Origin: Epiperipatus broadwayi
Taxonomy: Eukaryota; Animalia; Onychophora
Assembly (NCBI GenBank): GCA_028023455.1
Contig: JAQFVV010000011.1
Span: 3,534,001 to 3,598,000 of the forward strand
Direction of reading: 5' to 3'
Length of the DNA stretch: 64,000 nucleotides
Below are positions 1,154 to 64,000 of this stretch, piece after piece; within the stretch, counting starts at the first letter, position 1; each line of letters opens with the position of its first letter. The position numbers were made by a program, and so were the translations under genes. The notes beneath the pieces are model-generated. The model made no database searches and was not told the origin of the DNA. It worked only from the letters and a program-made list of their open reading frames with translations.

Positions 1154-1490
1154 TTGAACTCAGACTTTCAAGTCCTTACAATTATCCATTCCATCTTATG
1201 CAACTAATACATATGACTACATAATATAAAAAATAAATGATTTTCAATATACATATTTTATGCTACACCAGCACTCATCAGTTGGTCCAGATCACCATCT
1301 CCCACACATATATACAATCTGATGAGTGCTGGTTCAGCACAAAATACATGTATTGGAGATCATTTATCTTTTTCACATATATGTGGTCATGGATGTCAGT
1401 TGTAAAAGATGGAGTGGATAGTTAGAGGGAGTTTGAAAGTCTGAATTCAAGTCCCTTAATTACATTAAGTTTAGTATAGACAATATACAT
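1154..1490. mobile_element. Family A HHR repeat, head-to-head inverted pair, both cores decayed
   Basis: Minus CTGATGA at 1275-1281 and plus CTGATGA at 1319-1325 with GTGCTG/CAGCAC stem II; GAAA is AAAA in both; arms end ttgaactcagactttcaa / ttgaaagtctgaattcaa. Confidence 0.85.
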
Positions 1491-1701
1491 GTATTTAAAT
1501 ATTATAATTAAATATCTATATTTTTATATTCATTACAACATTCAATTTGTGACATAGATCTATATATGAATTCATAAATATATTGCAAACCGAACATCGC
1601 AAACATATTTAAAAACTATACATATATGATGAAGTCATTTCATAATACTGCAAATATTTAAATATTATAAGAAACAAGTAATGTAAGGTTTTGCCAATTT
1701 C

Positions 1702-1740
1702 AGCTCTGAAAAAGACTGATCAAACAGTTATAAAGTCAAG
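1702..1740 (+). ncRNA. Degenerate family D HHR-like motif
   Basis: agct CTGAAAA agactg atcaaa cagtt ataa resembles agct CTGAAGA agactg..cagtt GAAA at 22 kb and the 29.5 kb copies. Confidence 0.35.
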
Positions 1741-2929
1741 AAAGGATGATAATAAAACAACGAAGGAAGGATGATTTACAACCAGTGTTCAAAGAATAAA
1801 TTAAGCATCTTGTATTACTATTACAGAATATTTAACTACGCGTTTAAATGTTATTATAAAAAGATCAAAATAAATTTGCTTGTGTGAAAATAATAATGTT
1901 TTTTTCACTTATTTATAGTAAAAGTTTGCAACATGGCTTAATTTAATTAAACATGGAAACAATTAAGTTATAAGGTTAAACACAAATGCATCGAAACAAA
2001 ATTGAAATTTAATTACAATCACTATCAACCATTTCTAGTTCACTGTATTAAAAAGTTAAGTAAATAGGAATTAAAATATCTGTTTGACTGTTAGAAAATT
2101 TTATTTCAACTTCTGTCAACTTATAATAGACAACAGATATATGAGTAATAAGAATTTATTAAAAAAATCCACATCACAAACATTATATATATCATAACAG
2201 TTTTTATTTATACATATGAAAGATTTAACCTTCCATGAAGTCACTAGCGATGAATTTGAATAAGGTTTGGTAGTCGATTTTTGCTTAGACATATCACAAT
2301 ATTTATTAGTCTATTTTTGTTAAAAAATAAGACTTTTTGTTAAAAAATGAGAATGTCTGAGGACAATGAGAGAATTCACTGGAATTTTTAAAACTGACTG
2401 TATTAATAAATTTAACTAAACAACAAATCTTCCACTAATATGTAAAAAAATAATAATTATAAAGCAAGTCAATAAATGACAAAAATTATCATTCATCACA
2501 AATCAGTTTTTTTAAATACTAAATTTGTATTGGATAAAATAATCAACAATTAAGTCACGTGACTAGTGATTTGCAATCTATTTTCTCTTACGAGATTAGA
2601 AAACAGCAACTAGTAAGCCATTCAATCTACCCTGAATGAAACTTGACTAAAATCTTAGTCCAATAATAGTAATAAAAAGCAATCACATAAACTCACACAG
2701 AACATAAATTGCATTTACGTATATGTAAATTAATAAAAAATGTAATCTTTAATTTTACAATATTTTGTTTGAACTGAAAGTTAGCAAACAATTCTTCATT
2801 TAAAACTAGAATATAGTCCAAACACGATCAGTTTAGATTTGATATCTTCCTTTGGTGAGCATTTCCCTTTAATTGAATACTAATTGAATTTTACTTATTC
2901 CCTCATCACAAACAGAAAAAGGTTTATTC

Positions 2930-3012
2930 TTTTTTTTTTTTTTAAGTGTCATAGCATCGGCCGGGACGCGAACCCGCAACTGCGAGTGCAAGGCAGTCGC
3001 ACTGACTTGATA
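2930..3012 (-). mobile_element. tRNA-derived SINE, variant subfamily, 5' truncated
   Basis: Minus strand ...gcgggttcgcgtcccggccgatgctatgacac plus poly(A); B-box GTTCG; 3' half shared with copies at 18.9, 31.2 and 39.7 kb. Confidence 0.75.
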
Positions 3013-61291: not shown

Positions 61292-61542
61292 ATAGATAGA
61301 TAGATAGATAGATAGATAGATAGATAGATAGATAGATAGATAGATAGATAGATAGATAGATAGATAGATAGATAGATAGATAGATAGATAGATAGATAGA
61401 TAGATAGATAGATAGATAGATAGATAGATAGATAGATAGATAGATAGATAGATAGATAGATAGATAGATAGATAGATAGATAGATAGATAGATAGATAGA
61501 TAGATAGATAGATAGATAGATAGATAGATAGATAGATAGATA
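61292..61542. repeat. Perfect (GATA)n microsatellite, ~62 units
   Basis: Uninterrupted atag repeats, ~250 bp. Confidence 0.98.
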
Positions 61543-62135
61543 AACAGAGAGACAGGTAAAAGATAGTAAATGGCTGGGTGGCTAGAATTTTAAATAGTTT
61601 AGATGGTATTTTTGCTGCTTTAAATTTTTCCTTTTTTTTTTTTTTATCAAGAACGTTTATTACTAATGTGTACAGTGGTTAATGAAAGAAGCAATCAAAA
61701 AATTTCTGTATGTATTTTGTAAATGATTTGAGCTCAAATAGGTAAAGTCTAATTTTGCTCCGAGTCGCGCTCTGACGTCATGAAACCAAAGGTAACCCCT
61801 GCAATTTTTGACCCTTCTCTATTTTTTTTTGTTCTGGCTAAATAGAGAAATAGGACACAACCTTCCATACTTTGAAGTAATAAAAAAAATCTATTTACTT
61901 TTCAAAAATCAACATAAAGTAATAATTACAATAAAATATGATTGTTTTTTTTTTTAATGCTTTTTGATAAATAAGTAAATGTTTTTGTGGTTTAGTAATT
62001 TATCTTCGTTTTTTAAATTCATTTTATTGATAAGTGCTTGCACATGTTTTTATGTCCTTGTTTTTATGTTGGTTTAGTAATTTATTTTGCTGCCATACGT
62101 TTAATAAATACTTATACCCACTTTAGTCTAATAAT

Positions 62136-63049
62136 AAATCAATACTAGTATATTTTAAATACCGAACTTTAAACTATAATTAAAGGGATTTGAAATCAGA
62201 CTTTCAAGTTTCCTTCAGCTATCCACTCCATCTTATATAACCAATACCCATGACCACACACATGTAAAAATAATAAATGGTCTCTAATATACATGTTTCA
62301 TGCTGAACCAACCTTCATCAATTGGTCCAGATTGTAATCTTCCACATGTATACAATCAGTGCTCAGCTTAGATTAAGATCCAAATTGGTCAAACTTTAAT
62401 GGACATAGTTCAATCTTCTCCACACTCCAACTCTTCAGGCATCCACACCATTGAAAATCTGATGATGGAATGCTCAAACCCTTGTTGATGCCAATATTGT
62501 CATATCCATATCGACCTTCAGTCACTCTGACTTTTCATATATATATATGACCTTAATATTTCCATTTAAATACATAATGGGATAAACAGAATTCAGTATC
62601 TGTAATAAATCAATTACATCTTAAAGTTCGGTATTTACAATGTATTATTAGTAATTTATTACAGATTCTGCCTGAATTCTGCCTATCCCACTGTGTATTT
62701 AAATGGATATATTAAGATCATGTATATAAAAGGTTAGATTGACTTAAGGATAACCTGGATATAACAACAATATTAGCATCAACAAGGTTTGTGCAATACA
62801 TCATCAGATGTTCAATGGTCTGAGTGGCTGAAGAGTTGGAGAGTGGAGAAGATTGAAGTCAGTCCATTAAAGTTTGAAGATTTGCTTTCTTAATAAAAAC
62901 TGAGCACTTACTATAAATGTCTGTGAGAGATGATGATCTGGACAAACTGATGAGTGCTGGTTCATGTTATTGAAGATCATTTATCTTTTTACATGTGTGG
63001 GGTCATATATATTGGTTATGCTGAAGGAAGCTTGAAAGTCTGAGTTCAA
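62136..63049. mobile_element. Family A near-full-length head-to-head pair with 20-bp TSD
   Basis: Arms 62136-62616 (minus) and 62617-63049 (plus); TSD acccactttagtctaataat (62116-62135) / acccattttagtttaataat (63050-63069); both cores decayed. Confidence 0.88.
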
Positions 63050-64000
63050 ACCCATTTTAGTTTAATAATTGATTTTGAGACAAAATATTGGAAAGTGTTT
63101 TATAGTTTATTTCTATGAAATTTTGATATTTTGAATAAAATATCTGGAACAGTTTATGGCGTAGTGGGTGCAATGTCAAAATTTGTGTCAGAGATGCTAC
63201 TGGGGCTTCCTGTAATACTTAAAATCGCATAGAGAATGTACCAAAATTGCACATAATAATGTTTATGATGCTCTTTTACATTTAAGATGTTAAAATAAAA
63301 TGTATTATGATAAGCAATGGTAGAAAACTACTAATTGTGACTGTTATTGTTTGGGTGCAGTACTCTATAATCTCGTTACTCAGTCTGACTTCGGGCAGAG
63401 AATGTATATGTTCTCACTGCATGTAGATATGGATAGACATTATCCTTTGATTTACATACTCATAGTTATAGCAGGCATATATTTGAAATATTAATCTATG
63501 TAAAAATATGATAAATTAATTTCAATATCAATTTTATTTGATAGCAATAAACTTTTAATTAATAAACACAAACCCACATTATTGATAGAATATATTTAAT
63601 AACACAATAATAAAAACTAAATAAAATTAATTTTTATATTCAGTTAAACACTAATTACAAATGACAAGATGTTAAAAATAAATATGTCAATGAAAAGCAT
63701 CATTCCAACTCTTCAAAAACATAATATGTCAAGCATAAAAATAACCACAATAAATGTGTGAGGTCTTAACTTATACAATAGAATCTCACAGCTATATCAA
63801 TCCCTAAATAATCAATATGCTAATATTTTTGTCATTACAGAGGCAAAATAAACCAATCATTGTTAACACTCTAAACAGTAAGTACATATTTGTATATAAG
63901 CACAACATTAGTCCGACACGAAGAGTAGGTGTTTCTAATTAGTACACCCTTTCCATTGACAAGATTAAAAATAATATTCATGTCAGTTAATGCAATCATT

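Follow-up and report, generated by a model that had tools for sequence, protein, structure and literature searches.

A 64,000-nt stretch of the genome of the onychophoran Epiperipatus broadwayi (contig JAQFVV010000011.1, positions 3,534,001 to 3,598,000 of the forward strand; hereafter, the window) is AT-rich, with a GC content of ~27%, and is interspersed with short repeats that carry hammerhead ribozyme motifs. Sequence reading recognizes four repeat families, termed A, B, C, and D. First-look candidates in this 5.6 Gb animal genome number at least 3,600 for family C, at least 3,500 for family A, and at least 1,000 for family B. The element units are noncoding and 110–480 bp in length, and in the window they occur both as single copies and as head-to-head palindromes. 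We consider it very likely that these repeats are short noncoding retroelements mobilized by Penelope-like elements (PLEs), and that each head-to-head palindrome records one integration at a staggered break.

That each palindrome arose in one event had been proposed in a preliminary description of this DNA, and the proposal is borne out by target-site duplications (TSDs) that enclose the whole structure, by a terminal tail present at only one of the two outer ends in 44 of 46 pairs, by a 56:2 bias in the relative orientation of adjacent copies, and by partner arms that resemble each other more than they resemble other arms. The genome-wide part of this evidence derives from 90 loci (L001–L090), namely the 30 best-matching ones of each of families A, C, and B, taken with 1.5 kb flanks.

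Repeat Loci of the Window

The window contains nine loci for which a single geometry had been reported, and all nine display it: the left arm is the minus and the right arm the plus copy, the hammerhead-sense strand runs outward, and both 3′ ends point outward (Table 1). Long inverted repeats are evident at every listed locus in a self-comparison of the window and in an inverted-repeat scan. The only Rfam matches on the palindromes, at gathering as well as permissive thresholds, are to microRNA (miRNA)-hairpin models, which match because the palindromes are long hairpins.

Table 1. Repeat loci of the window, with their arms, outer ends, and flanking direct repeats (window coordinates)
Locus (kb)	Feature	Span	Strand or arms	Cores and outer ends	Direct repeat
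1.2	Family A head-to-head pair	1112–1513	minus arm 1149–1314, plus arm 1315–1471	cores decayed	borderline
10.7	Family A single copy	10634–11039	-	tail variant, short terminal duplication	
11.2–14.3	Decayed Penelope-like palindrome of two 5′-truncated copies, 3.1 kb	11224–14340	reverse transcriptase-like pieces outward from ~12690		
18.1	Family A single arm	18007–18206	-	tail variant; core CTGATGA..GAAA intact, helix II mutated	
22.0	Family D palindrome	21950–22149		CUGAAGA-A-helix II-GAAA at 22027–22053 (-) and 22086–22111 (+)	none
29.5	Family B array minus, minus, plus, plus	29180–29725	element 29193–29712	cores CUGACAA; left end with ~44-nt tail, right short	TAAAATAAAACTA, 13 bp exact, at 29180 and 29713
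35.3	Family A head-to-head pair	35124–35538		intact hammerheads 35288–35313 (-) and 35395–35420 (+); left tailed, right short	borderline, 12 bp with one mismatch
40.7	Family A single copy, ~350 nt	40626–41063	-	tail variant	
42.0	Family C single copy	42043–42310	+	minimal PLE-type hammerhead 42129–42152	
42.9	Family C head-to-head pair	42663–43078	full minus arm 42674–42901, 5′-truncated plus arm 42968–43067	minus arm with short end, hammerhead 42792–42815; plus arm with ~55-nt tail	GTAACATCTAA, 11 bp exact (16 bp with one mismatch), at 42663 and 43068
44.4	Family A head-to-head pair	44178–44674	element 44192–44660	left tailed, right short	TAATTATCATTTTG, 14 bp exact
46.9	Family A head-to-head pair with two later insertions	46161–47091	minus arm 46658–46746, plus arm to 47075	minus arm with short end, plus arm tailed	ATTATATATAGCTATA, 16 bp exact, at 46161 and 47076; spans later insertion
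62.6	Family A head-to-head pair with longer arms	62122–63069	minus arm 62185–62531, plus arm 62732–63006; 200-bp center	left tailed, right short	14 bp with one mismatch, at 62122 and 63056

The arms at the nine loci are 74–98% identical and are thus the remains of old insertions rather than fold-backs of the assembly; the family A pair at 1.2 kb, with 79–81% identity to other copies, is itself old. False palindromes could in principle be produced by chimeric fold-back reads, and the available short-read contigs do break at repeat edges. We regard such an artifact as exceedingly improbable, given that the arms differ by 2–26%, that the ends and centers are asymmetric, that TSDs lie within unique flanks at dozens of sampled loci, and that short-read contigs connect each edge of the 44.4 kb element with its unique flank.

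The pair at 46.9 kb has a composite structure. A miniature inverted-repeat transposable element (MITE)-like element occupies 46173–46657 between the left TSD and the minus arm, and a minus-strand family C fragment (46747–46903, at 46.8 kb) is nested centrally with an 11-bp repeat, GTTGAAAAGAT. Since the fragment and the MITE each possess their own target duplication, they are later nested insertions rather than template switches, and a template-switch chimera was rejected for this locus.

Contigs of a different organism also contain families A and C at high depth, matching the window at 42654–43115, 44194–44655, and 46658–47100. Both families are furthermore covered by short-read contigs of a presumed-RNA run, which show neither ends nor circles. 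These observations indicate that the two families are shared with related species, and that they may be transcribed.

Hammerhead Motifs of the Four Families

The family A motif is composed of CUGAUGA, a helix II of 5–6 bp, GAAA, the palindrome AUACGUAU, and then A|UUGGU, while its helix I is formed by UUGGU pairing with ACCAA just 5′ of the core, extended by GAUAAU/AUUAU. Over 52 copies the core is at least 90% conserved, helix II shows only G-C to G-U changes, and helix III is an 8-nt palindrome. Family C carries a minimal PLE hammerhead, GAAA-CUAG-UC|UGGGG, with a long helix I and a 3-bp helix II; in the copy at 42129–42152, helix III consists of 1 bp plus the CUAG loop, with predicted cleavage at GUC|U. 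Dimers of A and of C were co-folded with ViennaRNA and formed helices I and II together with an intermolecular helix III, in agreement with the prediction of the dimeric minimal-hammerhead model. Families A and C carry well-formed minimal (dimeric) type I hammerheads. As in retrozymes, the repeats are noncoding tandem units with a type I hammerhead in each unit.

These motifs share with the minimal PLE hammerheads of Cervera and de la Pena (2014; PMC4209133) a helix III of 1–3 bp, a palindromic loop (CUAG in C, AUACGUAU in A), and a long helix I with an internal loop. Families B and D, which are related to each other, differ from the minimal PLE type in presenting only the core and helix II: they read CUGANGA with one additional A after A9, followed by a 5-bp helix II and GAAA, the family D core being CUGAAGA. 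The family B copies of the window read CUGACAA, with a decayed G8; CUGACGA or CUGAUGA is found in most genomic copies, which marks those of the window as CpG-decayed.

More generally, most core and helix II variants among the sampled A and B copies have TG or CA in place of CG: GCACGAAA becomes GCATGAAA, for instance, and CTGACGA becomes either CTGACAA or CTGATGA. This pattern of CpG decay suggests that the repeat copies were probably methylated in the past.

The preliminary description had counted more than 20 hammerhead motifs from four families (A, B, D, and PLE ends). This count is not upheld: a fuzzy core search of the window yields 17 recognizable cores and two very decayed ones at 62 kb (~17–19 in all, 8 of them intact), and the motifs at PLE ends were not found.

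Target-Site Duplications

Direct repeats across random window positions, which serve as the null, have a median length of 7 bp, with 95th and 99th percentiles of 10 and 12 bp. Six insertions had been credited with direct repeats of 13–22 bp. Five of these (29.5, 42.9, 44.4, 46.9, and 62.6 kb) indeed carry repeats, of 11–16 bp (Table 1); at the single arm at 18.0 kb, the claimed TSD is not confirmed, as the best repeat is 11 bp with one mismatch and lies 20–40 nt off the boundaries. At 62.6 kb, a 9-bp repeat was dismissed as being at chance level, the true TSD being the 14-mer with one mismatch. The family D palindrome at 22.0 kb has no TSD when compared with the window null.

The genome sample extends this picture. 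The best direct repeats across the outer boundaries of family A are up to 20 bp long (median 12 bp), as opposed to at most 14 bp (median 9 bp) for permuted flank pairs, and several family C pairs have TSDs of 8–11 bp. Overall, TSD length is 8–19 bp, and the duplications surround the whole unit rather than each arm.

The One-Sided Tail

With all outer ends aligned in element orientation, two alternative 3′ boundaries emerge in each family. The short end stops at a fixed point, and the long end adds a tail of ~45 nt in A, ~44 nt in B, and ~57 nt in C, the range across families being 42–57 nt; the family A tail contains a CAGG/CCUG hairpin. In the A, B/D, and C elements, ~80–125 nt separate the hammerhead from the 3′ boundaries. 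The two outer ends of a pair are of different types, one long and the other short, in 15/15 pairs of family A, 17/17 of family B, and ~12/14 of family C, compared with 49% expected were the two ends independent (44/46 overall, p = 7e-12). The tailed end may be on either side of the pair. Single copies behave differently, with a tail in only 3/28 versus 18/42 hit arms in pairs (Fisher p = 0.007), and several apparent singles have an inverted partner that amounts to little more than the tail. The more complete arm is tail-less in 16/22 cases (p = 0.05), which is a trend only.

The difference between the short and the tailed termini bears directly on another class of inverted repeat. Fold-back or MITE-type DNA transposons, with chance hammerhead-like motifs in their inverted repeats, would also appear as long hairpins matching miRNA-hairpin models, and a genuine MITE with terminal inverted repeats does reside in the window at 46173–46657. 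Such an origin is nonetheless highly improbable for families A–D, whose TSDs vary over 8–19 bp and whose outer termini differ, where fixed duplications and fixed termini would be expected. Furthermore, their centers vary by locus through 5′ truncation, and many copies are single arms or include head-to-tail units.

The family A 3′ domain (for example, 35470–35535 and 18040–18075) contains, immediately ahead of the short end, a tRNA box A-like word, TAGTGTGGATAG, and a box B-like word, GTTCAAATCC, the latter reading GTTCGAACCCC in the 18.1 kb copy. ARAGORN detected no tRNA in the window and 13 loci, and the family A 3′ domain has no Rfam tRNA match.

Orientation, Partner Arms, and Centers

At the sampled loci, junctions between adjacent copies in the minus–plus versus the plus–minus order number 19:0 in family A, 20:2 in family C, and 17:0 in family B (combined p = 1e-14). 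The hit table of family D contains three adjacent pairs, all minus–plus. True partner arms are closer to each other than shuffled partners, the observed similarity being matched in 2/5000 permutations for A and 0/5000 for B, with an effect of 1.5–2%; the same permutation gave no signal in family C.

The centers vary among loci. The two arms stop independently on their 5′ sides, as exemplified by the family B combinations 1/32, 11/42, and 41/1, and they are joined with 0–4 nt of microhomology or 2–29 nt of filler. In family B, arms of full length abut at an 8-nt terminal palindrome, TTAATTAA, which they sometimes share. Inside the arms, head-to-tail units often recur in tandem with a period of ~460–480 bp in A and 87–111 bp in B.

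These regularities constrain the alternative that a palindrome is the product of two independent insertions, in which a second copy homes into or beside the first in opposite orientation, for instance through an endonuclease that prefers the AT-rich element. PLE endonuclease does cut its own pseudo-long terminal repeat (pLTR) junction in vitro (PMC11167929), nested later insertions are documented in the 46.9 kb palindrome (family C and the MITE), and the partner-similarity effect is small. Yet the TSDs lie around the pair and not around each arm, the arms abut with 0–4 nt of microhomology, both the one-tail coupling and the orientation bias speak against separate events, and an empty allelic site has been published for this very architecture (PMC3846280). 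Taken together, we find two independent insertions very unlikely.

Relation to PLEs and Retrozymes

The arrangement described here has a precedent. PLE copies consist of pLTR-ORF-pLTR, where ORF denotes an open reading frame, with an adjacent inverted pLTR, and an 8–10 bp TSD surrounds the unit (Arkhipova, 2013; PMC3846280). In the same work, the head-to-head arrangement is the most frequent, just one of the inverted pLTRs has a 31-bp tail on its 3′ side, an allelic empty site proves that the unit arose in one event, and pLTRs alone mobilize unrelated sequence in trans. An equivalent description, with the tail drawn at one end only, was given by Craig et al. (2021; PMC8557442). The preliminary description had not recognized the palindromic layout of small noncoding ribozyme elements as a described rule; in fact, inverted head-to-head copies, the one-sided tail, the whole-unit TSD, the empty site, and trans-mobilization have all been published (PMC3846280, PMC8557442), and the rule is the published PLE signature, here found on noncoding retrozyme-like families.

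Every part of the PLE insertion signature is present in the onychophoran families: 5′ truncation, partial head-to-tail tandems, an adjacent inverted and 5′-truncated copy placed head to head, a one-ended tail, a TSD of variable length enclosing the entire unit, insertion into AT-rich targets, and a repeat that includes a hammerhead. There are also differences. Families A–D have no ORF, and hence neither the reverse transcriptase (RT) and endonuclease ORF of PLEs nor the single ORF with a telomerase-like RT and GIY-YIG domain that defines an autonomous PLE. Their tails are 42–57 nt long as opposed to 30–40 bp in PLEs, the one-tail rule is near-absolute, and single copies are mostly tail-less. 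Given that the layout is that of PLEs and that coding capacity is absent, we class families A–D as nonautonomous, PLE-mobilized elements and not as PLEs.

The metazoan non-LTR retrozymes (Cervera & de la Pena, 2020; Li et al., 2026, preprint; PMC7229834; 10.64898/2026.07.22.740005) are likewise noncoding, AT-rich, and organized in tandem units with a type I hammerhead; their TSDs exceed 4 bp, and a dependence on PLEs has been proposed for them. The retrozyme papers describe tandem arrays and circular RNAs, and the terms "inverted" and "head-to-head" are absent from them in the present sense (PMC7229834; 10.64898/2026.07.22.740005). In the families described here, by contrast, inverted pairs dominate, and the elements end elsewhere than at the ribozyme cut site. 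Pairs of minimal hammerheads on opposite strands, 100–700 bp apart, were noted in passing by Cervera and de la Pena (2014; PMC4209133).

Formation of the Palindromes

A very likely course of events can be outlined from the genomic layout. Elements A, B/D, and C are built like the pLTR/ORF-start region of a PLE, comprising a minimal type I hammerhead, the ~80–125 nt that follow it, and two 3′ boundaries, and PLE RT/GIY-YIG proteins presumably copy their RNAs in trans. A single integration into a staggered break would generate each palindrome and its TSD of 8–19 bp. One arm starts at the upstream boundary, giving the short end, and the other at the downstream boundary, giving the long end with its tail; both extend 5′-ward over variable distances, sometimes through several tandem units, and are joined centrally by 0–4 nt of microhomology or a few filler bases.

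Purified PLE protein offers a biochemical counterpart to these steps. It cleaves and extends both DNA strands, and reverse transcription in vitro starts at two adjacent internal RNA sites located ~85–120 nt past the hammerhead cut, with the tail lying between them (Frangieh et al., 2024; PMC11167929). This distance is comparable to the 80–125 nt measured here. Uncleaved RNA serves as the template, and hammerhead cleavage is dispensable in vitro (PMC11167929). Whereas in vitro both sites are used on both strands with no preference (PMC11167929), the genomic copies described here have one of each per insertion. The two distinct 3′ boundaries and the direct TSDs argue for two priming events, one per DNA strand; we infer that the arms were primed on two DNA strands at two RT start sites, with PLE proteins as the machinery. 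Priming from both 3′-OH ends, as proposed in the preliminary description, is plausible and agrees with the in vitro extension of both strands (PMC11167929). Set against self-priming in cis or template switching, priming on two strands at two start sites seems to us an evenly balanced proposition.

The principal competitor is an origin from a single primer, in which one target-primed complementary DNA acquires its inverted arm in cis by snap-back and self-priming or by a template switch. Self-priming has been proposed for PLEs (Arkhipova, 2013; PMC3846280), and it would account for the meeting of full-length family B arms at TTAATTAA, for center fillers that are themselves palindromic (as at L082), and for subfamily variants common to partner arms. 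However, an arm copied in cis should be tailed at both ends or enter inverted flank, whereas the 3′ boundaries of the two arms differ in 44/46 pairs, and the repeats in the flanks are direct rather than inverted; cleavage and extension of both DNA strands in vitro (PMC11167929) likewise favor separate primers. A single-primer origin therefore appears unlikely, although it deserves serious consideration.

The tail coupling, the tail-less singles, and the length trend suggest an order of strands, with the upstream site used first and the downstream site second. Building on priming at two sites, the two arms may even be synthesized in a coupled fashion from one RNA or one ribonucleoprotein, a tentative extension that we rate as somewhat doubtful. 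The first DNA strand would prime the upstream site and yield the arm without a tail, which is usually the longer one; RNA on the 3′ side of that site would stay single-stranded and could template the second DNA strand, which would prime the downstream site and produce the tailed, usually shorter, inverted arm. Were this correct, one step would explain the tail, its one-endedness, its rarity in singles, and the head-to-head geometry, and the spread of animal retrozymes would depend on uncleaved RNA, copied by PLE target-primed reverse transcription, rather than on circular RNA.

Candidate Machinery

We infer from the insertion signature and from PLE remnants that PLE RT/GIY-YIG proteins are the trans-acting machinery. 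The remnant in the window, the decayed palindrome at 11.2–14.3 kb, contains RT-like ORF pieces that read outward, the best of which falls into eukaryotic RVT_1/DUF8422/HTH_animal clusters of a protein atlas; neither a TSD nor a hammerhead was found at its ends. Partner candidates among the ORFs of the 90 sampled loci comprised LINE (long interspersed nuclear element)-type RT pieces and one GIY-YIG-like ORF, and were rejected as none is joined to A, B, or C.

The GIY-YIG-like ORF (L073:2689–3111, minus strand) lies ~1 kb away from a copy of family B and contains the motif VVYFISC...YYGET; it falls into eukaryotic GIY-YIG clusters of the atlas with high confidence, and Pfam gives no match. The window itself harbors two adjacent plus-strand ORFs of 236 and 633 aa at 23019–25640, a region of very strong GC skew (0.38–0.57). 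The second ORF has RVT_1 (E = 1e-31) and zf-RVT domains and thus marks a LINE-type retrotransposon, not a PLE.

Evidence to the Contrary

Several observations run counter to the view that families A–D are PLE-mobilized hammerhead elements whose palindromes each arose in one integration. With respect to the ribozymes, no helix I or III is evident in cis for families B and D. No Rfam hammerhead model has a hit in a scan of the whole window, at gathering or at E ≤ 10, and the best score, obtained on a 126-nt stretch, is that of Hammerhead_3 at 16 bits (E = 0.42; threshold 48.5); minimal PLE hammerheads are known to escape Rfam-type models (PMC4209133). With respect to the insertions, the 1.2 kb pair looks tailed at both outer ends, an exception to the one-tail rule, and two family C pairs are ambiguous in this regard. 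Two plus–minus junctions occur, both in family C, and the sampled loci are the best BLAST matches rather than a random draw.

Direct evidence of integration from empty sites did not materialize: a 6 kb query returned no allelic or paralogous empty site, its 40 best hits all being to an unrelated high-copy MITE, and the short-read contigs, which break at repeat edges, neither confirm the palindromes nor show empty alleles. As for the machinery, the Pfam match of the 11.2–14.3 kb remnant is weak (RVT_1, E = 0.13), the remnant has no BLAST match to families A–C, and the 350 kb inspected contain no autonomous PLE with the tail or hammerhead of A, B, or C.

Other Repeats Nearby

The MITE-like element at 46173–46657 is 485 bp long, has ~20-bp terminal inverted repeats (CTATAGCAGGAGTGGCCAAC... 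/ ...GTTGGCCACCCCTGCCCTATAG), and is inserted at TA; the 40 best genome hits mentioned above are copies of it, with 88–92% identity. Two regions, 59042–59380 and 61022–61597, are highly self-similar, with up to 63 self-hits per position, and probably represent a tandem or satellite-like array. Further inverted repeats outside families A–D occur at 332–1010, 39126–39220, 48189–48329, and 54527–55044, and another dispersed short repeat family (86–94% identity) is found at 2923–2982, 18835–18968, 31142–31245, and 39624–39760.

Implications

The strict one-tail coupling is the only point of this analysis that is modestly new. What the onychophoran repeats add is the full PLE insertion signature, quantified on abundant hammerhead-bearing noncoding repeats of an animal genome. 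Such a signature constitutes direct genomic evidence for the mobilization of retrozyme-like elements by PLE enzymes. In practical terms, the palindromes mimic miRNA hairpins and MITEs in annotation pipelines. In mechanistic terms, the near-absolute one-tail rule and the tail-less singles provide in vivo constraints on how PLEs integrate.

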